A stretch of 64,000 nucleotides of DNA from Raja brachyura (lineage: Eukaryota): assembly GCA_963514005.1 (NCBI GenBank), contig OY740804.1, positions 19,716,001-19,780,000 of the forward strand. Direction: 5' to 3'. The translations under genes and the position numbers were made by a program. Positions 2,565 through 62,662 of the stretch are shown here, in pieces. The notes under the pieces are model-generated. The model had not been told where the DNA came from. It saw nothing but the letters and a program-made list of their open reading frames with translations, and did not search any database. Every line of letters starts with the position of its first letter. The stretch's first letter is position 1.

Positions 2565-2607
2565 ATGGAGATGGCGACGACGCTTCTTCAGTTTGTACTG
2601 TGGGCAG
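2565..2607 (+). CDS. Gene A exon 1, signal peptide MEMATTLLQFVLWA
   Basis: Kozak GCCATGG, hydrophobic leader, phase-1 donor CAG|GTGAGG. Confidence 0.8.
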
Positions 2608-3316
2608 GTGAGGGGGGGCGGGGCTGGAGGGGGCGTGATGAAACGGGAGGACACGATTCGGAGAGGTTATAGGAGACGTTGAGGCCACTGTCCGGCCCCA
2701 CCCCCAGACTCCACACTCCAGCTCCCTGCACCTACCCTTTCCCCATACCCACTCTCCTCCACCTCCACACCCCTCTCTCTGGACCTCCTTCCTCCACCTC
2801 TCCACCCCTCTCCCTGGACCAAGATCCACTCCTCCTCTCCATGAACCAAGACGGATCACCAAACATCAGCTCATAGTCTCCCTGATTGACTTGCCCAATT
2901 TTCTTGGGAGATTTTCCCTCTACATTTTCATCCTCTGGTGTCCAAGTCCCACACAGCCTGCTGCTATCTTCTGAAGAACCACAAGCAGGACGGTGCTGGC
3001 AAATCCATTCTTTCAGCCTGCTCTTCCCTCCATCTTTTCTGTCTGGATCCATTCCCTTCCCACCTATATCCATACCATCTCTAATGGCTTGGGACACATT
3101 GGTAGTTTTCAGTTCCTTGATCCCAATCGGTTCGCCTTCTGCCCCAGACGTTCTCCATTCCCATAACATTCAACATCCTTCCCCTCGCACTCCCACTACC
3201 TCTATTACCACTCTCCCCACATTGCACCTCTCCTTACACACTCTGCCCTCCCTGATTCCTCTTTGTCCCATTCCTTTACCCTCACACTCTCTCTCTCCCA
3301 CTCTGTCCCCATCCAG

Positions 3317-3646
3317 ATGTGGCTCAGGCTATCTGGATACCCTCCTATGTGGTGAATGCCAGCATCGGACAATCGATAACGTTGCGACCCCTTCTGAAGG
3401 CCCACCCTGAGATAATTCAGTGGGGTTACCGCCGGAGAAACGGGGAGCCTTCTATCACTCTGTGTGAGAAGATGGGCAACAGAAGCAGGATGTGCTTCTC
3501 ACCCTCCGCCACACGCATGGAGTTGTTGCCTGACTATGGACTGCAATTGTTCATGGTCAAGCCCTCTGACAATGGGCTGTATCGCATGGTAGTTTGGTAT
3601 ATCTGGGATGAGATGACACGCAGTGTCCTTCAACTGCAAGTGTACG
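3317..3646 (+). CDS. Gene A exon 2, IgV domain (CD2/SLAM/CEACAM N-type)
   Basis: Acceptor CCCCATCCAG|, donor TACG|GTGAGT, 330 nt. VNASIGQSITL, C-strand W, DNGLY, LQLQVY. Confidence 0.9.
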
Positions 3647-4329
3647 GTGAGTAGCCAGCTCTCTCTCCCCAGGTAATTGATGAGGAAAGGTAAAGGAGAG
3701 TTGGCAAGTGAGAAGCCAAAAACAAACTATAAGAGCTTCTACAGATTTATAAAAAGAAAATGGAAACTTAATCTGGACCTCTTTCATGCCGAGGTAGGAG
3801 ATATTGTATTGGTGAATAATGACAGGAATAAAACAAATATTTTATAGCCTTCTTGGTGGAGGAAGTCATTGAAAACCTCAGAAGAGAGTGGAGGAGAGCA
3901 GATTTATGTGAAATGTGCAGTCAAGATAATCAGCATCCAACACATTACAGAATCATTAATGGGACTGGAAAATGATCAATCTAATCTGACCCAACCTCTG
4001 AAACCCACCACCTCTATCACCTTAAGAACAAGGGTTGTAGATGCAGGGTTAGAAAGTCCTGCACTAACATGACTGCTCGTTTCCTTGACTGTTCGGTTGA
4101 GTTACTCCTGCACTTTGTGTCTATCTTAGCAAGTATATCAATTGCACTGTGGAACGCTTCCACCAGAAGGACTGCAGAATTTTAATAGATTTCAGCACCA
4201 CCTTCTCAAGATGAATAGTGCCTTTCAATTTCTACCTTTCAGGGGGAGTCAAGAGTCAAGAGAGTTTAATTGTCATATGGTGACAATTATGATAAACATG
4301 CTCAAGTTAATTGGAGTAGGTTGTTTGCG

Positions 4330-6760
4330 GGAAAAGGAATGTCTGGAAAGTGGGATGCTTTTAAAAGTGTGATGACAAGAGTTCACAGCATGCATGTTGC
4401 TGTTAAGAGTGCAGGGAAATGCAGGAGGGTGTAAGGAAGCTTGGATGACAAGGTAAATTAAGGCTCTGATCAGGAAAAAGAAGGGACAGGTATAGCCAGC
4501 TGGGATCAAGTGTATCCCTGGAGGAGTTTAGGGAATTGAGAATTAATCTGCAATTTGAGAGGGAGAAGGTGAAATTGGATGTGTTGGTGTTGTAGCTGAG
4601 CAAAGAGGACTGTAGAGGCATGAGGGAGGAGCTAGCCAAAGTTGACTGGAAAGGGACCCTAGCATGGGGTGACGGTGTAACAGCAATAGCAGGAATTTCT
4701 GGGAATAATCCGGAAGATGCAAGATCTTTTCATTCCAAAGAGGAATAAAGATTCTAGGGGGAGAAAGAGGCGACCGTGGCTGACAAGGGAAGTCAAGGAC
4801 AGTATAAAGCTAAAAGATAAGGCATATAACATAGCAAAGATTAATGGGAAGCCAGAGGATTGGGAAGCTTTTAAAGAACAACAGAAGGTAACTAAAAAAC
4901 CAAAACGGGGAGAAAAGATGAAATACAAAGGTAAGCTAGCCAATAATATAAAAGAGGATAGCAAGAGTTTCTTCAGTTATATAAAGAGTAAGAAAGAGGC
5001 AAGAGTGGAAGCTGGGCCGCTGGAGAATGATGCAGGAGAAGTGATAATGGGGGAAAAAGAAATGGCAGAGAAGTTGAATAACCTTTTTGCATCATTCTTC
5101 ACAGTGGAAGACGTGCTTGAAATGTGCTTGAAATTCAAGAGACTCAGTGGGTGGAAGTTAGTGGAGTGGTTATTACTAGGGAGAAGGTGCTTGGGAAACT
5201 GAAAGGCTGAAGGTGAATAAGTCACCTGGACCAGATGGACTGCAGCCTATGAAAGAGGTGGCTTTTGAGATTGTGGTGCCATTAACAGTGGTATTTCGAG
5301 AATCACTAGAGACAGGAGAGGTCCCAGATGATTGGAAAATTATCAATATTACCCCGCTGCATAAGCAAAGCAGAATAGTGGGAACTATAGGCCAGTTAGT
5401 CGAACTAACTAATATTTTAGAGTCCATTGTAAAGGATGAGGTTACGGAGTATTTAGAAGGTCATGATAAAATAGGCCAAATTCAGCATGGTTTTGTGAAG
5501 GGGAGATCTTGCTTGTCAAATTTGCTGGAATTCTTCGAAGAAGTAAATAGGAGGACAGACAAAGGAGAGTTAGCAGATGTTGTTTACTTACATTTTCAGA
5601 AAGCCTTTGATAAGGTGCCATATGTGAGACTGCTCAGGAAGATGAGAGCCCACGGTATCAAAGGGCAGATAATAGCATGGATAGCAGGTTGGCTGGATGG
5701 CAGAAATCAGTGTAGCAATAAAGGTGGCTGTTTCTGGTTGGCTGCCAATCCGCAGGGGTGGTGCTGTGGCCGCTACTCTTCACGTTGTATATTAATGATT
5801 TGGATGAGGGGATTGAAGGCTTTGTGGCCAAGTTTGCAGATGATATGAAAATAGATGGAAGGGCAGGTAGTGTAGTGAAAGCAGGGACTCTGCAGAAGGA
5901 CTTGGACAGGTTGGGAGAGTGGGCAGAGAAGCAGCAGATGGAATATAGTGTAGCAAAGTGTGGAGTCATACATTTTTGTAGTAGGAAAAAGTAATTTTAT
6001 AAACTTTTCTAAAAAAGACTATTTTCTAAATGGGGAGAGAATCCAGAAAATGGAGGTGCAAAGGGACTTGGGAGTGCTGGCGCATGGTTCCCAAAAAGTT
6101 AATTTGCAAGTCGAATCGGTAGTAAAGAAAGCAAACTCAATGCCAGCATTTATTTCAAGAGGGTTTATATACAAAAACAGGGATGTAATGCTGAAGCTCT
6201 ATAAGGCACTGATAAGGCCGTATTTGGTATATTGTGAGCAACGTTGGGCACCAAATCAGAGGAAGGATGTGCTGGCTCTGGAGAGGGTCCAGAGGAGGTT
6301 TGCAAGAATGATCCCAGCATGAGTAGGTTAACCTACGATGAGCATTTGTCGGCACTGGGCCTGTACTCGGTGGAGTTTAGAAGAATGAGGGTGAACCTCA
6401 TTGAAACATACAGAATAGTGAAAGGCTTGGATAGAGTGGATGTGGAGAGGAATGTTTCCACTAGTGGGAGAGTCTAGGACTAGAGGTCACGGGCTCTGAA
6501 TTAAAGGAGGTTCTTTTAGGAAGGAGTTGAGGAGACATTTATTTAGTCAGAGAGTGGTGAATCTGTGGAATTATTTGCCACATAAGGCTGGAGAGTGTAC
6601 GTCAGTGGATATATTTAAGGGAGAGATAGATAGATTTTTGATTAGTACAGGTCAGAGGTTATGGGGAGAAGGCAGGAGAATGGGGTTAGGAGGGAGAGAT
6701 TGAACGGTGGAGTAAACTTGATGGGCCGAATGGTCTAATTCTACTATCACTTATGACCTT
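4330..6760 (+). mobile_element. Decayed CR1 LINE (ORF2 RT region to 3' end)
   Basis: Frameshifted ORFs with [40 protein letters not shown]. Confidence 0.9.
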
Positions 6761-7644: not shown

Positions 7645-7929
7645 AGCCGGTGATGAACGTCTCAATCCTGGTGAGTCAAGCAACGGAAAACAAGGCCTGC
7701 ATGCTGCATTGTCAGGTGTCGCATGGCACTGGACTGCAATTCGTGTGGCATGCTGCTGGCTGTGAGCTGACCTCCAACCGACTGCACAACATCACCGATA
7801 AAGGCAGCTCCCTCATTGTCTCCTCGGCCGCCATGCATTCCATCATCTACTCATTCTACCGCTGCACCGTCTCCAACCCTGTCAGCAAGCAGAGCATGGA
7901 GGTCAACCTGAAACGGGATTGCAGCACAG
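7645..7929 (+). CDS. Gene A exon 3, IgC2 domain of CD2/SLAM type
   Basis: Acceptor GCCTGTAG|, donor ACAG|GTCTGA, 285 nt. EPV..CMLHC..W..YRCTVSNPVS..C pattern typical of SLAM/CD2 C2 domains. Confidence 0.9.
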
Positions 7930-10228: not shown

Positions 10229-11428
10229 CAGCCACCTCTCATTTTACACAAGGGTTGCATTCTGGAAAAGCAGTGTGTATATCAAAAGTGTGTAAATTAA
10301 ACATATTTTTACTGTAAGAATGTATGTAAATGTTACAGGTTACGGGAAAAGTCATATAACAGACTGCATCACACAATAAATAAATTGTATAACTGCCATT
10401 ATTCTTTTACCTCCCTTATTAATAAAGAAAAAAAAGTTAATAAGGAAAAACCAACAGGAAAGACATCTTAAATTGCCAGTGAAGAAAGCAAATGGTATCA
10501 GTGAAGAAAGCAAATGGTATGTTAGCATTCATAGCGAAAGGATTTGAGTATAGGAGCAGGGAGGTTCTACTGCAGTTGTACAGGGTTTTGGTGAGGCCAC
10601 ACCTGGAGTACTGTGTACAGTTTTGGTCTCCAAATCTGAGGAAAGACATCCTTGCCATAGAGGGGGTACAGAGAAGATTCACCAGACTGATTCCTGGGAT
10701 GTCAGGACTTTCATATGAGGAAAGATTGGATAGACTCGGTTTGTACTCGATGGAATTTAGAAGATTGAGGGGGGATCTTATAGAAACCTACAAAATTCTT
10801 AAGGGGTTGGACAAGCTAGATGCTGGAAGATTGTTCCCGATGTTGGGGGAGTCCAGAACAAGGGGTCACAGTCTAAGGATAAGGGGGAATTCCTTTAGGA
10901 CCGAAATGAGGAAAACATTCTTTACACAGAGAGTGGTGAGTCTCTGGAATTCTCTGCCACAGAAGGTAGTTGAGGCCAGTTCATTGGCTATATTTAAGAG
11001 GGCGTTAGATGTGGCACTTGTGGCTAAAGGGATCAGGGGGTATGGAGAGAAGGCAGGTACGGGATACTGAGTTGGATGATCAGCCATGATCACATTGAAT
11101 GGCGGTGCAGGCTCGAAGGGCCGAATGGCCTACTCCTGCACCTATTTTCTATGTTTCTATGTTTCTATGTAAATAAACGTTGTCGATAAACACTTACATT
11201 AACGACTGGTCACTTCTGCTTTCCCAAGTTGGCTTTGGCAGAGAGTCAATGTTGTTCTGTTTAGTACCTTGCCAGGCATCGCAGGCCACGATGCTGCCAG
11301 ATATAAATTTGATGTGTTACAGGGTATTTCAAAAATACGAACATGTAAATTAAGCTTTGGTATTAATTAAACAAGTGAGTTATTCCAAAAATGTAAAAAT
11401 CAAACACACGTAAAACGCGAGTTGGCTG
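10229..11428. mobile_element. Non-autonomous Tc1/mariner (pogo/Tigger-like) DNA transposon, interrupted by a CR1
   Basis: Imperfect TIRs CAGCCACCTCTCATTTTAC / GTAAAACGCGAGTTGGCTG, TA on both sides. The host CR1 rejoins as GGAGTA|CTGATTTCAGTTTTGG. Confidence 0.75.
10477..11170 (+). mobile_element. Young 5'-truncated CR1 LINE
   Basis: Open 192-aa ORF2 C-terminus (10492-11070) and (TTTCTATG)n tail. Confidence 0.95.
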
Positions 11429-11430
11429 TA

Positions 11431-13190
11431 CTGATTTCAGTTTTGGTCACTGTTATAGGAAAATGTTGTTAAGCTGGAAAGAGTTCAGAGAAGATTTATG
11501 AGGGTTTTGCCAGGACTTCAGAGCCAGAGCTGTAGCGAGAGGTTGGGCAGGCTGGGACTTTATTCCTTGGAGCAGAGGAGGGGTAATCCTATAGAGGTGT
11601 ATAAGGTCATGAGGGGATTTGATAGGGTAGATGCACAGTGTTTTACCTAGAGAAGGGAAATCGAGAACCAGCAGACATAGGTTTAAGGTGAGAGGGGAAT
11701 GATTTAATAGAAACCTGCACCTTTTTCACACAGAGGTGGCGGGTATATCTATTGAGCTGCCAGAGGAGGTAGATTAACAACATTTAAAAGACATTGGACA
11801 GGTACATAGATGGGAAAGTTTTTGAGGAAGGGATTTGTGGAAGGGAGATCTTGCCTGATGGACCGATTTAAATTATTTGAGGAAGTAAATAGCAGAATAG
11901 GCAAAGGAGAGTCTGTGGATATTATTTACCTAGATTTTCAGAAGGCCTTTGATAAGGTGCCACATTGTGAGGCTGCTAAAGAAGATGGTATCAGAGGGAA
12001 ATTAGTAGCATGCATAGCAGGTTGGCTGTGGCAGGAGGCATAGAGTGGCAATAAAGGGGGCTTTTCCGGGTTGGCCGCCAGAATGGTGCTCCGTTGTGGT
12101 CAGTGCCTGGGCCGCTACTCTTCACGTTCTATATCAATGATGTGAATGCGATAATTGGAAAGTTTTGTAGCCAAGTTTGCAGACTATATGAAGATAGGTG
12201 TAGGGGCAGGAAGTGTAGAAAAACCAGCGACTTTGCAGAAGGTCTTGGACAGGTTGGGAAAGTGCGCTAAGAAGTAGCAGATTAAATTCAGTGTAGCAAA
12301 GTGTGGAGTCATACATTTTGGTAGTAGGAAGAAAAGCATAGACTATTTTCAAAATGGAGGTATAATTCAGAAATTGGAGGTGCAAAGGTGCAGAGTGCTG
12401 GCGCGGAATTCCCCGAAACGTAATTTACAAGTCGAATTGGTAGTAACGAAAGCAAATGCAATGCTAGCAGAAATTTCGAGAGGACAAGAATATAAAAGTA
12501 GGGATGTAATGCTGAGGCTTTTTAAGGCATTGGTCTGACTGCATTTGGTGTATTTTGAGCAGTTTTGGGTCTCATATCCTAGGAAGGATGTGCTGGAGTT
12601 GGAGAGGGTCTAGAGGAAGTTTACGAAAATGATCCCAGGAATTATTGAGTTAAACTATGATGAGAGTTTGACAACACTGGGCCTGCACTCGCTGGTGTTT
12701 AGAAAGATGAAGGGGCACCTCATTGAAACTTACCGAATAGTGAACAGCCTGGATAGAGTGGATGTGAAGAGGATATTTCCACGAATAGGAGAGTCTAGGC
12801 CCAGATGCCATAGTCTAAGAATAAAAGGACGTACCTTTAGAAAGATGGGGAGGAATTTCTTCAGTCAGAGAGTGGTGACTCTGTTGAATTCATTGCCACA
12901 GAAGGTTGTGGAGGCCGTCAATGGATAGAGATTGACAGATTCTTGATTAGTATGGGTGTCAGGAGTTATGAGGAGAAGGCCGGAGAATGAGGTTGAGAGG
13001 AGAAGATAGATCCGCCATGACTGAATAGCGGAGTAGAGTTGATGTGCTGAATTGTATAATTCTGCTCCTATAACTAAAGAGGAATTATGGGCCAAACGTG
13101 GGGAGGTGGGACTAGTGTAGATGGGGCATCTTAGTCAACTTGGACAAGTTGGGCCGAAGGGCCTGCTTCAATGCCACATGACTCTAATTA
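11431..13190 (+). mobile_element. Decayed CR1 fragments (nested copies)
   Basis: [29 protein letters not shown] motifs. Confidence 0.85.
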
Positions 13191-14181: not shown

Positions 14182-14319
14182 GGTTTGATGTGAGGTCATT
14201 ACCAATCTGGGCCTTTATACTGATCGGAATCTTTGGCGTTATCCTAACATTCCTCCTGTTCTTTTTCATCTTCTTGTTCTGGTGCAGGGACATGAGATGG
14301 TTCCTTCGTAGCAGACTAG
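14182..14319 (+). CDS. Gene A exon 4, transmembrane segment
   Basis: Acceptor GCATTGCAG|, donor CTAG|GTAAGT, 138 nt. GFDVRSLPIWAFILIGIFGVILTFLLFFFIFLFWCRDMRWFLRSRL. Confidence 0.88.
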
Positions 14320-14867: not shown

Positions 14868-14947
14868 CCTGGTTCAGTCCGCCAATGTCCCAGTACCCGG
14901 TTTTTAGCTCCGTTGTGGCTGTTCAGCATACCCAAGTAACTTCATGA
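14868..14947 (+). CDS. Gene A cytoplasmic exon, short-tail option AWFSPPMSQYPVFSSVVAVQHTQVTS*
   Basis: Strong acceptor CCTTTTCCCTTCCTTAG|, phase 1. Confidence 0.5.
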
Positions 14948-15087
14948 AGGTGAGGTTAACTCCTGACTGGGAGAGTTCAGGATGGGGCAGGAAGAGGGTT
15001 GGTGTAGAATACATGGATCTGGTGTGGCGTCCTGAGGACACTGAGCCAGACTACTCTGAACTTCCAATGTGGCTCTGCCCTGTGTGA
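14927..15087 (+). CDS. Gene A cytoplasmic exon, long-tail option with VEYMDL and PDYSEL tyrosine motifs
   Basis: Weaker acceptor GGCTGTTCAG| in phase 1 gives AYPSNFMKVRLTPDWESSGWGRKRVGVEYMDLVWRPEDTEPDYSELPMWLCPV*. Confidence 0.55.
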
Positions 15088-15324
15088 GGAACCCTTCTCC
15101 TTCTTATATAAATATATGTAGGCAGGAGGAGGCTGTTCAGTCCCTCTCCAGCCTGTTATACGGGGACACGAGGAGGCAACTCAGCCCATCTCCAGCCTGC
15201 TAGTAGCAGACAGGAGGGCCGTTCATTCCCTCTCCAGCCTGTTATACGGGAACAGGATGAGGCCATTCAGTTTCATGAACGAGGAGATCTTTCAGGTCCT
15301 TAAGCTTGTTCCTACCTCCAATTA

Positions 15325-15760: not shown

Positions 15761-17184
15761 CTCTCTTTTGTTACGTCTCTCGCAACCTGGTACACGCAAA
15801 TTTCTTGCACTGTCCCCCACCTTTCCCAGTCACTCTGCTCCTTTCACCTTCATACACTCATCTCCCATCCCCGAGTCCCATATTTCCATTTTACCCCCTT
15901 CTTTCCCTTCCCCCAGTCCTCTACTACCCACCCTCCCCCTGGCTTTGCATTTCACACCTCTGCTTTCCTTATCTGACACCCTATTGTCACCTTTGCACCT
16001 CTAACCTTTGTTACTTACTCCACCCATCTGCCAATCATCTCCCCCTCCCTCACCGATACCTTGCTATTACTTGTCCATTTTGTCCATTCTATCTACAGAT
16101 GATGCCTGACCACAGAGTTCCTCCAACACTTTATTTTAACCCGTCGACCGACAATATTAATGTTGGCACATTGCTATTTCTTTGTTATCACTAGGCTAAA
16201 ACCTCAAACTTTGTTCCAACAGCACTGTGGAAGCACCTTTACCAGAGAGATTGCAGCAGTTCAAAAAGATGGCTCTTCCATACATTCTCAAGGGAACTAG
16301 GGATGGGTAATAAATGTTGGCCTATGATACCAAGATCCCTCACAAAGAAAATCTAAATTTGTTGAGATTATCCCTGTTTCTTCCAAAGGAGTCTTCTGCA
16401 TTGACTGTTATTAACTGTGCATATGCAAATTTGTCCCACAATTGTCCCATACATACTGTTCATCCGTCTAGTGTGTGCCTCTTATAGTCTGCATTAAAAC
16501 CAGTCCTTTCTGCTTCTCCCTCAGGGTGTGAGAGGACCAGAAATGCTGCTTATGGCCTCTCACCTAGGCAAAGCCACCTCGCTGTCACAAGGCTCCAGGA
16601 CCAGGACCACCACATCATCGCTGCCATCACCTTACTGGTGTGGAGGACCTCCTCTACACCTGCTTTATGCATGACATCACTAAGGAGGAGGGGAGATCCA
16701 GGGTGTGGAAACCTAGCTCAGTTCCAAGGTGCGGGTGCACTCTTTGTTTGAACCTGATGTACTCTTTCTCCAGTAAAAATAATTTCTGAACTCGAATAGT
16801 GTCTTGACTCAGAAGGGGATGGCCAGTGAAAGCCTAATGCTGCACTGATATGTTAGTGTTCTGGGGAAAAGGTATCTGCATGCTGTCTATGGGAAATCAT
16901 GTTCTTTGGTCCACAAAGGGTGGGAGAACTGTCAGTAACCCTGCATAAATTTGCCCAGCCTGTCTGTTGCTGAAATACTCCTGACCAAGAGGTGAGGATT
17001 CTGGCTAGATTAGGGTCAGAGCCTGGAATCATTGGCAAATTCTGAATAGCATTAGAGATCAGGATCTGGATGACGGGTTGGGGTCTGGAACTGAAATGGA
17101 AAGTTATGTCCAGGATGGGATTAAGGATCATAATCTGGGATTAAAGTTCATCATATCGATTAGATTAGGGATCACAAACAGTTA

Positions 17185-19779: not shown

Positions 19780-19954
19780 CTCGAGCGTCGACCGTTGAAG
19801 CAGCGGTTTAAACCGCGGGCACGAGCGGATCCAAAGTGAGCTCTGATTGGCGATTCGCCGGAGGGCGGTGGCCCGACCGAGCGGGTGCTTCCCATTGGTT
19901 GATGGAGGCGGGAGGGGGCGCGGAGGCATCGCGGCCGTCAGTTGGCGCCGCGCG
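19780..19954 (+). promoter_or_regulatory. Gene B CpG-island promoter
   Basis: CpG-dense; ATTGG at 19846 and 19894; GC-box-like runs before the ATG. Confidence 0.6.
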
Positions 19955-20009
19955 ATGGCCGTCCCTGTCCCCGTCCCCGCCCTCAGCGTTCTCATGGTGT
20001 TGTGCGCCG
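19955..20009 (+). CDS. Gene B exon 1, signal peptide MAVPVPVPALSVLMVLCA
   Basis: GCGATGG start, hydrophobic leader, phase-1 donor GCCG|GTAAGG. Confidence 0.82.
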
Positions 20010-24440: not shown

Positions 24441-24493
24441 CTTGAGTTTGGAGTGAGGGTTCGTGCCACTATCCATGTCATCCTCAGTCCCAG

Positions 24494-24823
24494 GGCTGGC
24501 TCACGGCATCACACTTGGCACGGACTATGCATGTGCTCGGTTGGACTCCAAAGTCAGCTTTCCTGTCAGTCTGAAGAAGGAGCCCACCTTCCTGGAGTGG
24601 AGCTTCCGTAAATCGCCTCGCTCCACACCTTCTGTCATCTGCATCTGGTACCTGCCCGACCAGCGGGAGTGCCGGGGTAGCTACACGAACCGGGCGCACA
24701 TCTACATCAACGGCACACTGTTGCTGGGCTCAATCCGTGCTGCTGACTCCGGCTGGTACTATCTCCATGCCAAGTTCAGCCAGGACCGAAGCATCCACCA
24801 CAAAGTGCAGCTATATATTTTCG
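24494..24823 (+). CDS. Gene B exon 2, IgV domain 1
   Basis: Acceptor GTCCCAG|, donor TTCG|GTGGGT, 330 nt. LEWSF, NGTLLL, DSGWYY, VQLYIF. Confidence 0.9.
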
Positions 24824-25940: not shown

Positions 25941-26270
25941 GCCAAGTCTGTGCAACTGCATTGGTCAATGACTACAGATGTAGTCGGGTGAACGTCAATA
26001 CCACCCTGTCCGTCCATCTGAAACAGGCGCCCACCGTCCTTCAATGGACCTTCCGCAAGTTGCCAAAATCCCAGCCCTCTGTCATCTGTACCTGGAACCC
26101 GAATGACAAGCAGGAATGCCATGGTATCTACAAGCAACGGGCACACATCTACAACAATGGCACACTGGTGCTGGAGTCAGTCCGTGCAGCTGACGCTGGC
26201 TACTACTGCCTACACGCTGAGTTTAGCAAAGGGAAAAGCATCTTCTTCAGCATGCAGCTATATGTTTTTG
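25941..26270 (+). CDS. Gene B exon 3, IgV domain 2
   Basis: Acceptor TTGCTCCCAG|, donor TTTG|GTGGGT, 330 nt; close paralog of exon 2. Confidence 0.9.
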
Positions 26271-27503: not shown

Positions 27504-27577
27504 CCTCCTCATCGAGGACAGTTCGATCACCACTTCCACTGCTTCTCGGACTGATGCTGCTGAAATGCTCCCTGTAG
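27504..27577 (+). CDS. Gene B exon 4, probable GPI-anchor signal ASSSRTVRSPLPLLLGLMLLKCSL*
   Basis: Acceptor TTCTTTCCTTTTCAG|, phase 1. Small residues, spacer, hydrophobic end. Donor AAG|GTAAAC at 27596/27597. Confidence 0.78.
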
Positions 27578-30032: not shown

Positions 30033-30072
30033 ATGATTGCCGTCCTCGGGCTCCTCTTGGCTTTTTGGGCCG
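30033..30072 (+). CDS. Gene C exon 1, signal peptide MIAVLGLLLAFWA
   Basis: GCCATG start, hydrophobic leader, phase-1 donor GCCG|GTAAGG. Confidence 0.85.
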
Positions 30073-38366: not shown

Positions 38367-38696
38367 GCAGGACCGAGGCTGTGATGTTCCACACCGAGTA
38401 TCTGATGGGGAACATTAATTCAAGAGTGGTCTTCCCACCCATGACGAACACGGAAGCTATCTCCCTTACCTGGACCTTCCGTAAATCGACAGGTTCGAAG
38501 CCAACACCAGTGTGCATTTGGTACTTCAGCTACCCCATCAAATGCTGGGGGACCTACATCAAGCGGGCTAAGCCACACGGCGACGGCTCCCTGACCATCA
38601 CGCAGCTGCGGCAAACTGACAGCGGCTGGTACTATCTCATTGCCAACATGGGATTCAACAGGGTGATGAACCGAAGGCTGCACCTGTCTGTGCAGA
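38367..38696 (+). CDS. Gene C exon 2, IgV domain
   Basis: Acceptor CTCTCTGCAG|, donor CAGA|GTGAGT, 330 nt. LTWTF, DGSLTI, DSGWYY, LHLSVQ. Confidence 0.9.
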
Positions 38697-44121: not shown

Positions 44122-44129
44122 GTGTAGTC

Positions 44130-44930: not shown

Positions 44931-44931
44931 T

Positions 44932-46440: not shown

Positions 46441-46459
46441 TTTTCTTTTTACGGCAGAG

Positions 46460-47449: not shown

Positions 47450-47526
47450 GCTCATCAACATCACGGATCATTCCCTGTTCCCTCTCACTCGTTGCTGCTC
47501 TGTTGGTTTGGAAGTGTTTTTCATGA
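47450..47526 (+). CDS. Gene C exon 3, probable GPI-anchor signal SSSTSRIIPCSLSLVAALLVWKCFS*
   Basis: Acceptor CCTCCTTTTTAG|, phase 1; donor AAG|GTAAAA at 47539/47540; same layout as gene B exon 4. Confidence 0.78.
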
Positions 47527-48209: not shown

Positions 48210-48675
48210 GATGTCCCCGTCTGAGCCATGAGCCCCAGCAGACCGTTGAGGATCTTCTCGTCATGGGAGCCGGAGCCCTTTCCGTCGGAAATGTGTGAAT
48301 CAGGACAGCTGGGAGTGACTGCAAGACCCTGGTGACACTGGGCCAGGAACCCCATCAGACATCTCGATCTGATGCCGTCTGCTGCCCCCTGCCCTCACCC
48401 CATTAGACCCCATGGGGTGGAGGGGAGTTCCTTCCCCTACCCCTGTTGAAACTCAGCCTGTCTGCACCACCACTCACCCTGGGTGAAGGGGAGGGTCCCT
48501 CTTCCTGTCTGGGGTTGTGGTAATTGATAGAGGAGGTAACACCTCCTCCAGCATTTACCCTGTGGATGGAATGAAAGGGGTTCAAATTAGAACATCAGTC
48601 GTCAGGAAGAGAGTTGCATAAGGGCTGGCATTGGATGGAGGCACCTGGACGTTCCAATAAAACCGTCAAATATTA
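48210..48675 (+). other. Gene C terminal (3' UTR) exon with polyA signal
   Basis: Acceptor TTCCCGCAG|; AATAAA at 48656; paralog of the 27940 exon. Confidence 0.7.
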
Positions 48676-49789: not shown

Positions 49790-50392
49790 ACTAGGTTCAG
49801 GAGTAGCCAGCACCGCCATTCAATGTGATCACGGCTGATCATCCCCAATCAGTACCCCATTCCTGCCTTCTCCCCATATCCCCTGACTCCGCTATCTTTA
49901 AGAGCCCTATCTCTTGAAAGTATCCAGAGAACCGGCCTCCATCGCCCTCTGAGGCAGAGAATTTCACAGACTCACAACTCTCTGTGAGAAAAGTTGTTTC
50001 CTCGTCTCCGTTCTAAATGGCTTACCCCTTATTCTTAAACTGTGGCCCCTGGTTCTGGACTCCCCCAACATCGGGAACATGTTTCCTGCCTCTAGTGTGT
50101 CCAAACCCTTAACAACCTTATACTTTTCAATTAGATCCGTTCTCATCCTTCTAAACCCCAGAGTGTACAAGCCCAGCTGCTCCATTCTCTCAGCATATGA
50201 CAGTCCTGCCATCCCGGGAATGAACCTTGCAAATCTACGCTGCACTCCCTCAATAGCAAGAATGTCCTTCCTCAAATTAGGGGACCAAAACTGCACACAA
50301 TACTCCAGGTGTGGTCTCACTAGAGCTCTGTACAACTGCAGAAGGACCTCTTTCCTCCTATATTTGATTCCTCGTGTTATAAAGGCCAACAG
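49790..50392 (-). mobile_element. CR1 3' fragment
   Basis: Minus ORF 49964-50398 containing [15 protein letters not shown]. Confidence 0.9.
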
Positions 50393-50399
50393 GCCCAAT

Positions 50400-52480
50400 C
50401 GTAGGGTGGGAAACTGAGCAAGTCATTGAAAAGTCAGTGAGTAAGGTTTTCAGCAAAAGAGACTGGCCATAAGTCAGTAACAGAAAGGGATAAGGGTGTT
50501 ATAGAGATCATGGTCCAGAATTTGGAGATGAATGTGGAGTTTAATATCAAGGTTTAATAGCAAGGTCTTGAAAGGTAAACCGTGAGTAGCTATCTGCAGG
50601 TAATGGGAGCAGGAGTCATTCCAAAGTGATGAGAGTTTGGAGCGAATGATCCTATGAAGTGCAAGAAAAGCAAGACCAGGGTACTGTGTATGTCCAGGGA
50701 AAGCAAGGCCTGGATAAAACAATTAAAGAGAAGCATCAGGGACTAAAGAGGTGAAAACAGTTGAAGTCCTTCTGGAAAATCTAAAGTGTAGGAAGTAACT
50801 TGGAAAAGAGATTAGGAAATCAAAGATATTACAGGTGGAGAAGATTCCAAAGCCCATTTAAATTACATTTAAGAGCAAGGAGGTAACTAGGAATTGAGTG
50901 GGACCAAAGGGATAAAGGATCTAGGCGAGGCCTTTAACAAATATTTTTAATTTATATTCATATAGAGTAGAACATTTTATTTGGAGAATTCGGGGAGGGA
51001 AACAGTGATATTCTAGAACTTATTATAGGTAAGCCCTGTGTAGGGACATTCTAATTAGTGAAATATGTCCTCACAAAATTGACAAACATTTTTTGAAATA
51101 CTAAATAAAATTTGCTCTAATTGAATTTATTTTAAAAATTCTAATAAATAAGCAATTAATGTTTTCCAACCCGGTTTCTTGATGCATGTGCAGATGATGT
51201 AGGTTCACATTACGGAAAAATAACAACGCTGAACATTTTCTAGGAAAACAAGCCCCTCCTCTGAAATGCAAGGGGTGCCTGTGTCATTTAAAATGAATGT
51301 GAGATGTCTTGGCGGGTTTAAAGGTGGATCAATCCCCAGAGATTGAGGATGCATTCCAGGTCAAATGGGAAGTAAAGATGGAGATTGCTGAGCCCAGGCA
51401 GGGGTGTTCAAATGATCGCAGGCCACAGGCAAGGTTCAAGAGACCGGGGGACACCACATGTATCTTTATTGAAAAGGGGAGTAGACATGCCAAGTAATTG
51501 TATAGGCCAGTTCATCAATTGTCAGTGATTGGGAAATTATTGGGAAAACGATCTGAGGAACAAGCTTATTCTATTTTGGAAATGCAAGGATTGATCAAAG
51601 ATTGTTAACATGGTTTTGTTCAGTTGGGTGGGAATAAGATCGGTTTGACCAGATCAATTGAATTCATTCATTTTTAAAGTGGTGGTAAAAATTGATGTTA
51701 ATAGTGAGGAGGATAATCTTAAACCACAGGAAGATATTGATCACTTGATAAAATGTGCAGAGCAATGCAGAGGGAATTCAATCCTATAAGTGTGAGGTCA
51801 TGCAGTTTGGATGAACTAATAACACTGGGACATATACCATGAATGTAAGGCCCTAGTGAGTATTGATGAACGGAGGAATTGTGGGCGACAATTCACAGAT
51901 CCCTGACGGTGACAGCAAAGTGATGAAGAAAGTGCATGGGATACCTGCTCTAATTAGCCAGAGCGTTGAATATAAAAGAAGGGAGCTTTATAAAATATTG
52001 GTTAAGCTGCAACTGGAGTAATGTGTACTGTTCTCGTCTCCCTATTACAGGGAGGAATTGATCCTTTTTATAGAGAGCCTCTGCCAGAATCTGGAAGACC
52101 CTCTGTCAAAATATGGAATACCGTGTTGTGTTTTGTCTCCTTACCAAGGGAGGGGGATCTTGCCATCAAGGGAGTGCAGCTAACGTTTACCACACTGGTG
52201 TCAGGAATGGTAGATTTGCCTCACAAGGAGAGATGAAGTGGACTCGGCCCGTGCTCCCTCATATGCTCATTGAAATATACAAAATTCTTCCCAGGATTTA
52301 ACAGGCAGAGAGCAGAGAGGGCATGTCTCCCGGGCTGAGAAGACATGGATTAGGGGTCCCAGTCTGGGAATACTCCAATGCTTGGGTCTGAGGAGGCGAG
52401 GTCATTGAGTTCATTCAAAGCAGAGAGCGAGAGATTGCAGGAGTTTGAAGGAAAGAAGGGCAATGGGGATGGTGCAACAT
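50400..52480 (+). mobile_element. Highly decayed CR1 (also 49200-49780)
   Basis: Scattered CR1 motifs (GLKVDQSP, HGFV, CEVMQFG, LEY). Confidence 0.6.
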
Positions 52481-53314: not shown

Positions 53315-53360
53315 ATGAGCATTCCCTGTGGTGGTCTCCTGCTTTGGCTGATGTCTGCAG
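53315..53360 (+). CDS. Gene D exon 1, signal peptide MSIPCGGLLLWLMSA
   Basis: Hydrophobic leader, phase-1 donor CAG|GTAAGA. Confidence 0.78.
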
Positions 53361-53629: not shown

Positions 53630-54070
53630 ATATAACCATATAACAATTACAACACGGAAACAGGCCTTCTCGGCCCTTCCAGTCCGTGCCGACCATTTAT
53701 TTTCCCCTAGTCCCATCTACCTGCACTCAGACCATACCCCTCCATTCCCTTCCCGTCCATATACCTATCCACTTTACTTTTAAATGTTAAAATCGATCCT
53801 GCCTCCACCACTTCTGCAGGAAGATCATTCCACACAGCCACCACTCTCTGAGTAAAGAAGTTCCCCCTCATGTTACCCCTAAACTTCTGTCCCTTAATTC
53901 TCATGTCATGCCCTCTTGTTTGAATCTTCCCTACCCTCAATGGGAAAAGTTTATCCACGTCAACTCTGTCTATCCCTTTCATCATTTTAAAGACCTCAAT
54001 TAAGTCCCCCCTTAACCTTCTGCGCTCCAAAGAATAAAGACCTAACTTGTTCAACCTTTCTCTGTAACTC
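53630..54070 (-). mobile_element. CR1 3' fragment
   Basis: Minus ORF 53707-54054. Confidence 0.9.
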
Positions 54071-54139
54071 TGTAATATACCCCCACTATCACTCTCCCTG
54101 TCATTGGCAGGGGTGCTCTCTGTGTCTCACAAATGTCAT

Positions 54140-55365
54140 TGAGTTTTTTGAAGATCCTTTCTCACAAATCTGATTATTTTTTGAAGACATGACCAAAAAG
54201 GTCGATGAGGGCAGAGCTGTCGTTGTATACATAGACTTCAGGAAAGCATTTGATAAGGTTCCGCATAGCAGGCTGCTCTGGACAGTTAGATCACATGGGA
54301 TCCAAGGAGAGATAGCTGAATGGATAGAAAATTGGCTTCATGGAAGGAAGCAGAGGGTGATGGTGGAAGGTTGCTTCTCGGACTGGAGGCCTGTGACTAG
54401 TGGTGTGCTTCAGGGTCCGCTGCTGGGCCCGGTACTGTTTGTCATCTATATCAATGATTTTGATGAGAACATACACGGTAAGATTAGCAAGTTTGCAGAT
54501 GATACAAGAGTGGGTGGTTTTGCAGATAGAGAAGATGGTTGTGAAAAATTGTAGCAGCATCTTGATCGATTGGACAGGTGGGCTGAGGGATGGTTGATGG
54601 AATTTAATACAGAGAAATATAAGATGTTGCATTTGGGATGTCTAATATGGGCAGGACATACACAGTGCATGGTCGGGCCCTGGGGAATGTTGTAGAATGT
54701 TGAAGGTGGAGTCGCAGGTTGTCAAAAAAGATTTTGACACATTGGCCTTTATCAGTCAGTATTGAGTATAGAAGTTGGGAGGTTATGTTGCAGCTGTATA
54801 AGACATTAGTGAGGCCGTATTTAGAGTATTGGGTTCAGTTCTGGGCACCATGTTACAGGAAAGATGTTGTCAAGCAGGAAAGGGTACAGAGAGGATTGAT
54901 GAGGATGTTGCCAGGATGAGACGGTCTGGGCTATAGGGAGAGGTTGAATAAGCTGGGACTCAATTCCTAGGATCACAGGAGGATGAGGGGTGATCTTATA
55001 GAGGTGTATAAAATCATGAGAGGAATTGATCGGGTAAATCGGGTAGTCTCTCTTGCCCTGAGTAAGTGAATCGAGGACCAGACGACAGGTTTAAGGTGAA
55101 GGGGAAAAGATTTAATAGAAATCTGAGGGTACCTTTTTCCATACAAAATGTGGTGGGTGTATGGAACAAGCTGACTGAGGAGAGAGTTAAAGCAGGGACT
55201 ATCTCAACATTTAAGAAACAGTTAGACAGGTTTATGAATAGGACAGATTTGGAGGGATATGGAACAAACGTGAGCAGGTGGGCCTAGTGTAGCTGGGACA
55301 TGTTGGTCGGTGTGGACAAGTTTGGTCGAAGGGCCTGTTTGCACACTGTTTCACACTATGACTCT
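54140..55365 (+). mobile_element. Decayed CR1
   Basis: [28 protein letters not shown]. Confidence 0.9.
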
Positions 55366-56648: not shown

Positions 56649-56990
56649 TTGTTGGTGCCCTGGATGTGAAGGCCCCGGAGTACCCTGTCAATGCCAGCCT
56701 GCGGCAGCCGGCCTGGTTACCTGTACAGGTGGGCGCCCTGCCCCAGGACGCCGAGATCACCTGGAAATTCCAGGGCAAGGGACAGACGTCCCCGTCCATC
56801 ATCGTTCGCTACGAGGTCAAGGGGAAGCGAGTGAAGTACTTCGAAGGCACACAGTTCGAAAGTCGGGTGAAGCTGCTGGACAACTTTACCCTGGGGATCG
56901 ACAGCGTGAGGCTGGAGGATGTGGGGATCTACACCGTGTCGGTCGCTACCCCCACCGAGCATCGCGCACAGGTGTATCTGCAGGCGTACG
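56649..56990 (+). CDS. Gene D exon 2, cysteine-free IgV domain (CD2/SLAM/HEPACAM-like)
   Basis: Acceptor GCTCTCCCAG|, donor TACG|GTCAGT, 342 nt. EITWKF, FESRVKL, NFTLGI, EDVGIYTV. Confidence 0.92.
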
Positions 56991-57029: not shown

Positions 57030-57648
57030 GGATTTGAGTATAGGAGCAGGGAGGTTCTACTTCAGTTGTATAGGGTCTTGGTGAGGCCACACCTGGAGTA
57101 TTGCGTACAGTTCTGGTCTCCAAATCTGAGGGAGGACATTATTGCCATAGAGGGAGTGCAGCGAAGGTTCACCAGACTGATTCCTGGGATGTCAGGACTG
57201 TCTTATGAACAAAGACTGCATAGACTCGGTTTATACTCTCTAGAATTTAGGAGATTGAGAGGGGATCTTATAGAAACTTACAAGATTCTTAAGGGGTTGG
57301 ACAGGCTAGATGTAGGAAGATTGTTCCCGATGTTGGGGAGGTCCAGGACAAGGGGTCACAGCTTAAGGATAAGGGGGAAATCCTTTAGGACCGAGATGAG
57401 AAGGAGTTTTTTCACACAGAGAGTGGTGAGTCTCTGGAACTCTCTGCCACAGAGGGTAGTTGAGGCCAGTTCATTGGCTATATTTAAGAGGGAGTTAGAT
57501 GTGGCCCTTGTGGCTAAGGGAATCAGAGGGTATGGAGAGAAGGCAGGTACGGGATACTGAGTTGGATGATCAGCCATGATCATATTGAATGGCGGTGCAG
57601 GCTCGAAGGGCCGAATGGCCTACTCCTGCACCTAATTTCTATGTTTCT
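57030..57648 (+). mobile_element. Young 5'-truncated CR1
   Basis: Open ORF2 C-terminus to 57560 plus tail. Confidence 0.95.
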
Positions 57649-60050: not shown

Positions 60051-60153
60051 GGTGGGGTGAGAGGCATGCGGGTGGTCAAACAAGACGAGCTGGGCACAGA
60101 GGTGTGGCTCCCTGCGGTCCTGTACCAGAGACGGAATTGTGCCCTGGTTGCTT

Positions 60154-62360
60154 CATAGAAACATAGAAAATAGGTGCAGGAGTAGGCCATTCGGCCCTTC
60201 GAGCCTGCAGCGCCATTCAATGTGATCATGGCTGATCATCCAACTCAGTATCCCGTACCTGCCTTCTCTCCATACCCCCGATCCCTTTAGCCACAAGTGC
60301 CACATCTAACGCCCTCTTAAATATAGCCAATGAACTGGCCTCAACTACCTTCTGTGGCAGAGAATTCCAGAGACTCACCACTCTCTGTGTAAAGAATGTT
60401 TTCCTCATCTCGGTCCTAAAGGAAATCCCCCTTATCCTTAGACTGACCCTTTGTTCTGGACTCCCCCAACATCGGGAACAATCTTCCAGCATCTAGCATG
60501 TCCAACCCCTTAAGAATTTTGTAAGTTTCTATAAGATCCCCCCTCAATCTTCTAAATTCCAGCGAGTACAAGCCGAGTCTATCCAACCTTTCCTCATATG
60601 AAAGTCATGACATCCCAGGAATCAGTCTGGTGAATCTTCTCTGTACCCCCTCTATGGCAAGGATGTCTTTCCTCAGATTTGGAGACCAAAACTGTACGCA
60701 ATACTCCAGGTGTGGCCTCACCAAAACCCTGTACAACTGCAGTAGAACCTCCCTGCTCCTAACTCAAATCCTTTCACTATGAATGCTAACATACCATTTG
60801 CTTTCTTCACTGCCTGCTGCACCTGCATGCCTACTTTCAATGACTGGTGTACGATGACACCCAGGTCTCGTTGCATCTCCCCTTTTCCTAATCTGCCACC
60901 ATTCAGATAATAGTCTACCCTCATGTTTTTGCCACCAAAGTGGATAACCTCACATTTATCCACGTTATACTGCATCTGCCACGCATCTGCCCATTCACTC
61001 AGCCTATCCAAATCACCCTGCAGCCTCCAAGCATCCTCCTCACACCTAACTATACCCCCCAGCTTGGTGTCATCTGCAAATTTGGAGATGTTGCATTGAA
61101 TTCCCTCGTCCAAATCATTAATATATATTGTAAATAGCTGGGGTCCCAGCACTGAGCCTTGCGGCACCCCACTAGTCACTGCCTGCCATTCTGAAAAGGA
61201 CCCGTTTACTCCTACCCTTTGCCTCCTGTCTGCTAGCCAGTTCTCTATCCACATCAATACTGAACCCCCAATACCGTGTGCTTTAAGTTTGTATGCTAAT
61301 CTCTTATGCGGGACCTTGTCGAAAGCCTTCTGAAAGTCTAGATATAACATCCACTGGTTCTCCCTTATCCACTCTACTAGTTACATCCTCGAAAAATTCT
61401 ATCAGATTTGTCAGACATGATTTACCTTTCGTAAATCCATGCTGACTTTGTCCAATGATTTTACCACTTTCCAAATGCGCTGCTATCCCATCTTTAATAA
61501 CTGACTCTAGCAATTTCCCCACTACCGATGTTATACTAACTGGTCTGTAATTCCCCGCTTTCTCTCTCCCTCCTTTTTTAAAAAGTGGGGTTACATTAGT
61601 TACCCTCCAATCCTCAGGAACTACTCCAGAATCTAAGGAATTTTGAAAAATTATCACTAATGCATCCACTATTTCTGTGGCTACCTCCTTGAGTACTCTG
61701 GGATGCAGACTATCTGGCCCTGGGGATTTATCGGCCTTCAATCCGTTCAATTTACCCAACACCACCTCCCGGCTAACCTGGATTTCACTCAGTTCCTCCA
61801 TCTTATTTGACCCCCGTTCCACTGCTATTTCCGGCAGATTATTTATGTCTTCCTTAGTGAAGACAGAACCAAAGTAGTTATTCAATTGGTCTGCCATGTC
61901 CTTGTTCCCCATGATTAATTCACCTGTTTCTGACTGCAAGGGACCAACATTTGTTTTAACTAGTCTCTTTCTCTTCACCTATCTATAAAAACTTTTGCAG
62001 TCAAGTTTTATGTTCCCTGCCAGTTTCCTTTCATAATCTATTTTCCCTTTCCTAATTAAGCCGTTTGTCCTTCTCTGCTGGATTCTGAATTTCTCCCAGT
62101 CCTCCGGTAGGCTGCTTTTTCTGGCAAATTTGTATGCCTCATCTTTTGTTTTTATACTATCCCTGATTTCCCTTGTTATCCATGCATGCACCATCTTCCC
62201 CGATTTATTCTTTTGCCAAACTGGTATGAACAATTTTTGTCCATGCAGTCTTTAAATACCTTCCATCACACATCCACTGTCAACCCTTTAAGAATCACCT
62301 GCCAGTCTATCTTGGCCAATTCACATCTCATACCTTCAAAGTTACCTTTGTTCAAGTTCA
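60154..62360 (-). mobile_element. CR1 LINE, 5'-truncated, ~2.2 kb
   Basis: Minus RT ORFs 60718-62233 and CATAGAAA tail. Confidence 0.95.
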
Positions 62361-62386
62361 GATCCCTCTCCTCCTTTTCCCTGCAG

Positions 62387-62662
62387 AGCCGGTGTCTGGA
62401 GTCAGGGTGGAGGTGGCCAACAGCAGCTCTGGCCACTCCTGCAACTTGACTCTCCGGTGTTCCGCTGTGGCCGGAGACGAGTTGAACTTTGGCTGGAGCC
62501 CCGGGGCCGGCTCCCCCCTCGGGCAGATGTCTGACGGGGGCGACGAGCTCCTGCTGTCGCTGGTGGCCTCCGACAGAATCGACTACGCCTGCACTGTCTG
62601 GAATCCCGTCAGCCGTCAGACCACCAACTTCACCAGGGAGCATGTGTGTCAGCAGCACTCGG
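62387..62662 (+). CDS. Gene D exon 3, IgC2 domain of CD2/SLAM type (gene continues beyond the window)
   Basis: Acceptor CCTTTTCCCTGCAG|, donor TCGG|GTAGGT, 276 nt. EPVS..SCNLTLRC..W..YACTVWNPVS..C. Confidence 0.92.

Follow-up and report, generated by a model that had tools for sequence, protein, structure and literature searches.

Receptors of the CD2/SLAM and CEACAM families control the cross-talk of lymphocytes and NK cells in mammals, and they also serve as entry points for pathogens. CD48 (SLAMF2) and CD58 are lipid-anchored, non-signalling family members that serve as ligands of 2B4 and CD2. GPI-linked ligands and decoys are already known in both families, and the principle as such is not new here. 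Single Ig domains held at the membrane by GPI occur also in Thy-1 and CD160, the loci and sequences of which are unrelated to the genes denoted B and C below. To our knowledge, little has been written on CD2/SLAM and CEACAM receptors of cartilaginous fish, which are the oldest of the jawed vertebrates. Genes named slamf have been reported in the elasmobranch MHC region (PMC10751288), and our literature search found no description of the genes of the cluster analyzed here.

The window, a stretch of 64,000 nucleotides, is in our judgment rather probably a piece of a tandemly duplicated cluster of CD2/SLAM-type IgSF receptor genes from a cartilaginous fish, probably a skate. The cartilaginous-fish origin suggested by an earlier, sequence-only reading agrees with the nearest named relatives, which come from Rhinoraja (73%), Stegostoma, Rhincodon and Chiloscyllium.

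Gene layout and the receptor-type genes A and D

Seven Ig-domain exons (five V and two C2) are located on the plus strand of the window, all in phase 1 and with GT-AG flanks, and they join into four in-frame genes, A to D, with one terminal stop codon in each gene that is complete; all coordinates given below refer to this strand. Pfam detects a V-set or Ig domain in all seven plus-strand ORFs (best E 5.7e-8), no Ig exon was found on the minus strand of the window, and the Rfam and tRNA scans of the window were empty. The domains, the junctions and the in-frame models bear out the four same-strand genes and the architectures claimed for them in the sequence-only reading, and the limits of the claimed span coincide with the ATG of gene A (2565) and the donor site of the C2 exon of gene D (62662). 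Paralogous exons cross-match at 3e-37 (V1 against V2 of gene B) and 2.4e-10 (C2 of A against C2 of D). Single exons served as queries in all searches, and the joined, spliced models were used only for checks of frame and motifs. Spliced contigs are available for gene B alone, the models of A, C and D being built from the sequence. CCAAT-box-rich promoters are common to genes A, B and C; upstream of the leader of gene D, no CCAAT cluster was found.

Four ATTGG boxes (CCAAT in inverted orientation) are clustered in the promoter-proximal region of gene A (2402..2521). The gene starts with a leader exon (2565..2607; MEMATTLLQFVLWA/G) that ends in a phase-1 GT donor. The V exon (3317..3646), which is bounded by splice sites, encodes a domain without the B-F disulfide and with an extra pair of cysteines (TLCEK...RMCF); its match to Pfam V-set is marginal (E 0.047), and a PDB sequence search with this exon alone returned nothing. 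The C2 exon (7645..7929) contains YRCTVSNPVS and four conserved cysteines plus one more, matches Pfam I-set at 2.6e-6, and is 73% identical to the Rhinoraja longicauda LOC144605562 protein and 82% identical to a Logan ORF; a PDB sequence search with it alone was uninformative. A predicted transmembrane exon (14182..14319; LPIWAFILIGIFGVILTFLLFFFIFLFW...), with a hydropathy of 2.29 over 19 residues, follows in frame between AG and GT flanks. The predicted tail exon (14868..15088) has two candidate acceptors: the one at 14868 gives a short, motif-free tail with a stop codon that ends at 14948, and the one at 14927 gives VEYMDL...PDYSEL with a stop codon that ends at 15088. The ITSM (TxYxxV/I) is absent from both readings of the tail. 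Gene A would encode a type I membrane receptor, the tail of which can bear two YxxL tyrosine motifs.

Gene D extends past the end of the window. Its candidate leader exon (53315..53360; MSIPCGGLLLWLMSA/G) is the weakest prediction in the cluster. The V exon (56649..56990) matches Pfam V-set at 5.7e-8 and has the V domain of SLAMF6 as its best PDB match (E 3.5e-4), and the C2 exon (62387..62662) contains YACTVWNPVS and four cysteines. Like A, gene D is predicted to specify a type I membrane receptor in which a disulfide-less V domain and a four-cysteine C2 domain would be followed by a transmembrane segment.

The V-only genes B and C and their shark homologues

Gene B consists of a candidate leader exon (19955..20009; MAVPVPVPALSVLMVLCA/G), a V1 exon (24488..24823) with a Pfam V-set match and 88% identity to the Logan ORF P0001, a V2 exon (25941..26270) that matches Pfam V-set at 1.7e-6 and is 51-55% identical to V1, and a terminal exon (27504..27577) that encodes a GPI-signal-like end, (A)SSSRTVRSPLPLLLGLMLLKCSL, before the stop codon. 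V2 also resembles Pfam Receptor_2B4 (E 0.002), at 18.8 bits and thus under the cut-off of 21 bits. Contigs from runs X18 and X19 of a related species stop exactly at the borders of the V1 exon (24487-24824), and a contig from X19 ends at the borders of V2 (25940-26271) with unaligned flanks. In the spliced contig, which comprises a possible leader, V1 and the terminal exon, the joint 24824>27505 skips 2680 nt, exactly the modelled intron between V1 and the terminal exon, and V2 occurs in a separate, shallower contig. Depth in the related species is 30-40 over the exons of gene B versus 0-7 over its introns. On the upstream side of the V1 contigs, 29-99 letters remain unaligned, which would fit an exon located beyond the aligned stretch. 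The exact removal of 2680 nt with V1 joined to the terminal exon indicates that B is spliced and that V2 behaves as a cassette exon. The X18/X19 data are guessed to be DNA, so a retrocopy might in principle have given rise to the joint; even this origin would imply splicing. Thus, the leader-V-V-GPI product originally proposed for gene B holds as an alternative isoform and not as the sole product, given that the joint skips V2. Five of the six listed differences between V1 and the related species change the residue, which suggests that V1 of gene B evolves fast.

Ahead of the leader of gene C, the segment 29832-29995 contains one CCAAT box along with six ATTGG boxes. The gene comprises a candidate leader exon (30033..30072; MIAVLGLLLAFWA/G), a V exon (38367..38696; Pfam V-set 2.7e-6) that is 34-35% identical to V1 of gene B, and, 8.75 kb from the V exon, a candidate terminal exon (47450..47526; (S)SSTSRIIPCSLSLVAALLVWKCFS before the stop codon). 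The flank downstream of this exon is homologous to that of gene B, 27647-28225 matching 47900-48483 at 77%. The introns of gene C are long and full of transposons. A decayed fifth gene was considered at 42.9-48.5 kb on account of similarity to 22.7-24.0 kb and rejected, the similarity being that of a high-copy transposon that is absent from the intron of the relative; in this comparison, true paralogy between B and C is limited to the terminal exon and the flank that follows it.

As proposed from the sequence, B and C are V-only members that carry no C2 domain, the domain that CD48 and CD58 keep. Both end in a short stretch that is Ser-rich and then hydrophobic (10-13 aa), without a cytoplasmic part. 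By inspection and hydropathy, the pattern of a GPI signal (small omega residues, polar spacer, hydrophobic end) is present in B, C and a zebra shark protein, and the ends of B and C would most likely direct GPI anchoring. This zebra shark protein, LOC125449502 X1 (RefSeq XP_048381266.2; 152 aa, 'uncharacterized'), consists of a leader, a V domain and 'NSASRTDQIQHFLIPGLFLFKYILW', an end that parallels 'ASSSRTVRSPLPLLLGLMLLKCSL' in B and 'SSSTSRIIPCSLSLVAALLVWKCFS' in C; fragments of the same build are whale shark g30435 and bamboo shark chiPu_0021794. The proteins of Stegostoma tigrinum, Rhincodon typus and Chiloscyllium punctatum thus resemble B and C in the order leader-V-SxSRT-hydrophobic end and in a series of V-domain marks, namely WTF[KR][KR], xICxWY, a second cysteine 9-10 residues further on, NGSL and DSGWY, but their identity to B and C is no more than 24-37%, and they are annotated as uncharacterized or hypothetical. 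The sequence-only reading proposed a lineage-specific system; this needs correction for the V-only genes, which are not confined to a single lineage, orectolobiform sharks having genes of the same build. The retention of the Ser-rich/spacer/hydrophobic end from skate to shark argues that this end is functional.

It is conceivable that B, C or both are decaying relics that yield transcripts without a protein function, considering that spliced contigs come from B alone, that the introns of C are long and transposon-filled, and that V2 of gene B is often skipped. However, every exon is open and all splice sites are canonical, B is spliced in the related species at an exon depth of 30-40, and the build is conserved in sharks, so we regard decay as very improbable.

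Family assignment of the V and C2 domains

Alignments of the five V domains confirm the lack of the B-F disulfide: the B-strand cysteine is absent from all five, and the F-strand cysteine is present only in V2 of gene B. In the C2 domains of A and D, the cysteines at positions C18, C22, C73 and C92 do not vary, and each of them has its counterpart in the alignment with the SLAMF6 C2 domain. When the A/D C2 profile is compared with the PDB, the best whole chain is CEACAM1 (E 3.9e-4), with SLAMF6 at E 0.014. The top rank of CEACAM1 arises because several of its domains are summed; by single-domain score, the C2 domain of SLAMF6 is the best at 15.8 bits, against 12.1 bits for the best domain of CEACAM1, and the CEACAM1 alignments include only the B- and F-strand cysteines and not the first and last ones. 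The motif YxCxVxNPVS, put forward as part of a CD2/SLAM signature, does occur as YxCTVxNPVS in A and D, but is not exclusive, given that CEACAM1 has NPVS too. The C2 alignment with SLAMF6 and the first match of the D V domain make a good case for the assignment of D and A to the SLAM/CD2 type.

For B and C, the claimed CD2/SLAM type does not stand on the same footing, because JAML D1 (E 1.3e-10) and the N domains of CEACAM6, 1, 15 and 3 (2e-5 to 2e-4, with the CEACAM range reaching 1e-3) outscore 2B4 (1.2e-3) in the comparison of the B/C V profile with the PDB. A profile of the B, C and shark V domains aligns with the V domain of A (hhalign probability 96%, E 3.7e-9) with the extra cysteine pair in register, and the B/C V type is specifically related to the V domain of gene A, with which it has this pair in common.

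These scores bear on the possibility that the genes of the cluster, A, B and C at any rate, are CEACAM family members rather than CD2/SLAM ones, with a CEACAM1-like signalling receptor that bears ITIM/ITAM-like tyrosines and GPI-linked decoys that consist of the N domain only, as in primates and frogs. Besides the whole-chain match of the C2 profile, the shared NPVS and the preference of the B/C V profile for CEACAM N domains over 2B4, the long tail of A with VEYMDL and YSEL fits such an arrangement. The listing of the HMM search is dominated by giant multi-Ig proteins, which hide weaker single-domain relatives; among the matches listed, the mid-sized ones are named CEACAM3-like or PSG22-like and come from gar, sturgeon, stingray and horn shark. 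The atlas look-ups gave generic V-set/Ig clusters only, some of them CEACAM-like. Moreover, CEACAMs have been reported in cartilaginous fish, among them an EST of the little skate (PMC4079198, PMC5112662), and decoys with a GPI link are well established for the CEACAMs (PMC13278318). We nonetheless consider a CEACAM cluster unlikely: the single-domain scores favor SLAMF6, which alone aligns all four C2 cysteines of A and D and is the first match of the D V domain, and automatic 'CEACAM3-like' names in fish are no test.

The JAML match raises a second alternative, under which B and C would represent a V-set lineage of their own, JAML/CTX-like or of another kind, placed among SLAM-type genes, with products that are secreted or otherwise not GPI-anchored. 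JAML, a protein with two V domains, leads for the B/C V domains by sequence and also by fold (Z 14.9), gene B is likewise able to carry two V domains, and the hydrophobic ends of B and C are short. The predicted V structure is an IgV fold, with CD48, 2B4 and CD58 among the top fold matches (CD48 V: rmsd 1.5, TM 0.79). However, when the V model is re-ranked with VIA, JAML, nectin, CD48, CD58 and many nanobodies differ by only about 2 Z, so that the families are not separated by fold; the predicted C2 structure is poor (pLDDT 70) and its fold matches are generic. Furthermore, JAML has the canonical B-F disulfide, a transmembrane segment and a tail, whereas B and C have the other cysteine pair, as in the V domain of A, along with an end that is conserved in skate and shark. 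An independent lineage thus seems doubtful, more so than CEACAM membership.

Under the SLAM-type reading that we prefer, B and C would be real spliced genes that have kept only an A-like V domain, with B optionally adding a second one through its cassette exon. By analogy with CD48/CD58 and the CEACAM decoys, their products would sit on the cell surface with a GPI anchor, where, without any signalling of their own, they would bind through the V face to one of the cluster's transmembrane receptors or, alternatively, soak up a microbial adhesin. We tentatively propose, as a possibility only, an elasmobranch-wide family of GPI-anchored V-only proteins that derives from a SLAM/CD2-type V domain, is stabilized by a C'-C'' disulfide instead of the canonical B-F one and provides ligands or decoys for gene A, the V2 cassette switching between one and two binding domains. 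On the same reading, the presence of the V-only build in skates and sharks would make the family hundreds of millions of years old.

Comparison with known systems

What the cluster adds is the existence of spliced V-only members, probably with a lipid anchor, that sharks have as well. Gene A and either B or C, the V domains of which are specifically related, form a candidate pair that makes a receptor/ligand or receptor/decoy hypothesis directly testable near the root of the jawed vertebrates.

SLAMF6 (NTB-A; PDB 2if7) and the CD2/SLAM subset resemble A and D in the V domain without a B-F disulfide, the four-cysteine C2 domain and the transmembrane segment that follows, as well as in the use of one phase-1 exon per domain and in tandem clustering. 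Unlike SLAMF6, A has no TxYxxV/I switch motif, and C2 is missing altogether from B and C; sequence identity is low throughout the comparison (E 1e-2 to 1e-4). Compared with CD48 and CD58, in which C2 is kept, B and C consist of a single V domain (or two, in the V-V form) with the C'-C'' cysteine pair, and their GPI anchor is predicted. The CEACAMs share with the cluster the disulfide-less N (V) domain, NPVS in the C-type domain, the pairing of signalling and GPI-linked members, fast-evolving clusters and, in rodents, forms with multiple N domains; in contrast, CEACAM C-type domains have one disulfide, whereas the C2 domains of A and D have four conserved cysteines. JAML (PDB 3mj6/3mj7/3mj9), the best match of the B/C V domains, has tandem V domains, as does the long isoform of B, but differs in its canonical disulfides, transmembrane segment and signalling tail and in the absence of the C'-C'' cysteine pair; its combination of two canonical-disulfide V domains, a transmembrane segment and a tail is not seen in B or C.

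Gene models and their setting

Stop-to-stop translation, together with tblastn searches using the first exons found, detected five V-like and two C2-like open reading frames in the window, all on the + strand, and none of either kind on the minus strand. A Pfam V-set or Ig/I-set domain is present in all seven (best E-value 5.7e-8), the V domain of gene A being a marginal match (E 0.047), and each Ig exon has a pyrimidine tract and AG acceptor in front and a GT donor behind, at phase-1 boundaries. Short candidate leader (L) exons ending in ...A|G-GTAAG lie 5' of the Ig exons, and two short terminal exons 3' of B and C encode a Ser-rich segment that leads through a short spacer into a hydrophobic end of 10-13 residues and a stop codon. 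Joined by script purely as a frame check, the models are open with one terminal stop each, and all introns are GT-AG. Gene A (V 3317-3646, C2 7645-7929, transmembrane exon 14182-14319, tail 14868-15088) would encode 291 or 318 aa in the order L-V-C2-TM-tail; gene B (V1 24488-24823, V2 25941-26270, terminal exon 27504-27577), 154 or 264 aa as L-V1-(V2)-hydrophobic end; gene C (V 38367-38696, terminal exon 47450-47526), 148 aa as L-V-hydrophobic end; and gene D (V 56649-56990, C2 62387-62662), a first 221 aa as L-V-C2, the remainder lying beyond the window. The sequence-only reading had placed four same-strand genes with phase-1 GT-AG exons at 2565-62662; Pfam domains, splice sites and open frames agree with this, and the limits are the ATG of A and the splice donor closing the C2 exon of D, respectively. 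The gene cluster is real and well supported.

ATTGG (inverted CCAAT) boxes occur within about 400 bp 5' of the leaders of A, B and C (clusters at 2402-2521, 19573-19671, 19840-19892 and 29832-29995): four within 165 bp of the ATG in A, six within 205 bp in C, and two within 120 bp in B, plus another cluster some 290-380 bp upstream; there are none upstream of D's candidate leader. This pattern suggests common NF-Y-type TATA-less promoters for A, B and C. Inside the first intron of C, at 31860-32114, a fourth ATTGG cluster accompanies a weak leader-like ORF (MFGLLKVVWLLK, with a GT donor), which may be an alternative first exon or have no significance.

The window is vertebrate DNA (CpG observed/expected 0.36), and its introns are filled by reverse-transcriptase fragments of a single LINE family, which lie on both strands and are 76-97% alike (4690-6474, 10499-11164, 11810-13007, 17184-19264, 30636-31300, 44134-46971, 49805-50422, 53710-55360, 57030-57648 and 60154-62240), one of which begins 40 bp past the donor of D's V exon. 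C/T-rich low-complexity tracts at 26400-27500 and 32700-38000 (GC skew about -0.4) contain long proline-rich + strand ORFs that are coding-like but intronic. The similarity between 22670-24003 and 42887-44125 suggested a decayed fifth gene, which we rejected: this interspersed repeat of about 1.3 kb is a high-copy transposon, with internal inverted repeats and a depth in the thousands in 4/4 runs. It is missing from the orthologous intron of organism E, a related species (joint 22661>24003), and is therefore a recent insertion in the first intron of B; a second copy lies in the last intron of C. True paralogy between B and C is limited to the terminal exon and downstream flank (27647-28225 versus 47900-48483, 77%). 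Given that no further leader or CCAAT cluster occurs between C's V exon and 47450, the exon at 47450 is most simply read as the last exon of C, 8.75 kb off, with about 4 kb of repeat insertions in between.

Splicing of gene B

Reads were placed on the B region only (21700-27650); the DNA runs of organism E share about a fifth of 31-mers. Runs X18 and X19 of this organism are RNA-like in behavior, their run type being unrecorded and the automatic guess DNA; depth in them is 30-40 over V1, 16-30 over the terminal exon and 0-7 over introns. The contig ends, 24487-24824 for V1 and 25940-26271 for V2, fall at most one base from the predicted borders, and one contig of 977 nt runs from 24824 straight on to 27505, leaving out 2680 nt, the exact intron of the V1-to-terminal-exon model. 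Thus, gene B is spliced. The V1 contigs carry 29-99 extra 5' letters unplaced on 21700-27650, which fits a leader exon outside this region, and in the V2 contig (depth 8.8) 27-28 letters stay unaligned on either side, indicating that V2 is spliced as well. The joined form seen is V1-terminal exon, presumably preceded by the leader, and V2 is an alternative exon. Accordingly, the L-V-V form previously proposed for B is one alternative isoform beside the product in which V1 is followed by the terminal exon. Were X18 and X19 DNA, the exact removal of a GT-AG intron would imply a retrocopy of spliced RNA.

Family relationships of the four genes

The B-strand Cys is absent from 5/5 V domains, as the sequence-only reading held in describing V domains without the B-F disulfide, and the F-strand Cys is present in B's V2 only. 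Between A and D, the C2 domains share 32% identity and four invariant Cys. With a C2 profile searched against PDB sequences, CEACAM1 is the top overall match (E 3.9e-4), and it also carries, in the same alignments, the YxCxVxNPVS motif that had been taken as a CD2/SLAM signature, so that this motif is non-discriminating. The rank of CEACAM1, however, sums three domains; taken domain by domain, the highest score (15.8 bits) goes to the SLAMF6 C2, the sole whole-domain match, in which all four Cys align (CxxxxxC...YxC...C). On these alignments, the four-Cys C2 does discriminate CD2/SLAM from CEACAM, unlike YxCxVxNPVS. For D's V, the best solved relative is the SLAMF6 V (E 3.5e-4), followed by CEACAM1, CD166, CD8 and CD48. 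We regard A and D, with moderate confidence, as CD2/SLAM-type receptors, and CEACAM as the live rival family. The C2 exon of A has its nearest named match in an uncharacterized protein of Rhinoraja longicauda (73% identity) and matches a Logan ORF at 82%. This match and the shark proteins found with the B and C type of V domain indicate a cartilaginous fish, most probably a skate or another batoid. The tail exon of A (14868-15088) has two candidate acceptors, 59 nt apart, with reading frames confirmed from sequence: acceptor 14927 would yield ...VEYMDLVWRPEDTEPDYSEL..., with an ITIM-like VEYMDL and a second YxxL (PDYSEL) ten residues on, and acceptor 14868 a short, motif-less tail. The TxYxxV/I switch motif was not found in A.

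The V domains of B and C are marked by WTFRK, xICxWY, a second Cys 9-10 residues on, NG[ST]L and DSGWY; identity is 51-55% between V1 and V2 of B and about 35% between V1 and the V of C. In an AlphaFold model of this V type (pLDDT 77), the two Cys lie in the adjacent C' and C'' strands and would form a C'-C'' disulfide. The predicted fold is a plain IgV, with JAML on top, CD48, 2B4, CD58 and CEACAMs close and nanobodies tied; by sequence profile, JAML D1 is on top again (E 1.3e-10), ahead of ROBO and DSCAM segments and, further down, CEACAM N domains (2e-5 to 1e-3) and 2B4 (1.2e-3), and mid-sized library matches bear the automatic names CEACAM3-like and PSG22-like. Outside comparisons thus point to no single family for the V type of B and C. 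A profile of the B, C and shark V domains, on the other hand, matches A's V over its whole length (probability 96%, E 3.7e-9, both extra Cys aligned) and D's V with a probability of only 73%. Together with the leaders of A, B and C, which are alike in form, and their CCAAT-rich promoters, this match is best read as indicating that B and C derive from, or are sisters to, a receptor resembling A and have a V domain only.

The same V type finds proteins of the sharks Stegostoma tigrinum, Rhincodon typus and Chiloscyllium punctatum, all labeled uncharacterized or hypothetical. A profile search restricted to short proteins yielded Stegostoma tigrinum LOC125449502, whose isoform X1 (152 aa) consists of a leader, a V domain and then NSASRTDQIQHFLIPGLFLFKYILW-stop, resembling B and C in its SxSRT, spacer and hydrophobic end; the entries for whale shark and bamboo shark are partial versions of this gene. 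The V-only architecture is thus no artefact of how exons were chosen, and its age exceeds that of a single lineage. Of the lineage-specific cartilaginous-fish system envisaged earlier, the cartilaginous-fish part stands and the single-lineage part falls, since sharks carry the same V-only build, which is already in public annotation, unnamed and unstudied.

Possible roles and known systems

The exons and frames, the splicing of B, the conservation and the kinship of the B and C V domains with A's V have direct support. Beyond these, the C-terminus of B and C, in which small residues suited to an omega site are followed by a spacer of 5-8 residues and a hydrophobic stretch that ends the protein, leaving zero cytoplasmic residues, would direct GPI attachment, and the proteins may be displayed on leukocyte or epithelial surfaces. 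By analogy with CD48, which binds 2B4, and CD58, which binds CD2, their V-domain face could bind a transmembrane receptor of the cluster. Alternatively, B and C might be non-signaling decoys that intercept ligands or microbial adhesins directed against A, a role that has been suggested for CEACAMs with a GPI anchor (PMC13278318, PMC5112662). Between the window and the organism E contigs, 5/6 listed single-base differences in B V1 (24518-24762) change the amino acid, which, in this small sample, fits fast evolution of a binding face and hints at diversifying selection. A complex prediction for A's V with B's V1 returned no verdict on binding.

In elasmobranchs, slamf genes are stated to lie in the MHC region (PMC10751288). 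Our literature search found cartilaginous-fish SLAM/CD2-family genes in passing mention only, and no V-only lipid-anchored members. The cluster is useful to comparative immunology, as it holds a candidate receptor/decoy pair that can be tested; it involves no new principle. Both the CD2/SLAM and the CEACAM family have known GPI-linked ligands and decoys, and in both there are multi-V forms and tandem clusters that evolve fast; single-Ig GPI proteins are known elsewhere, such as Thy-1 and CD160.
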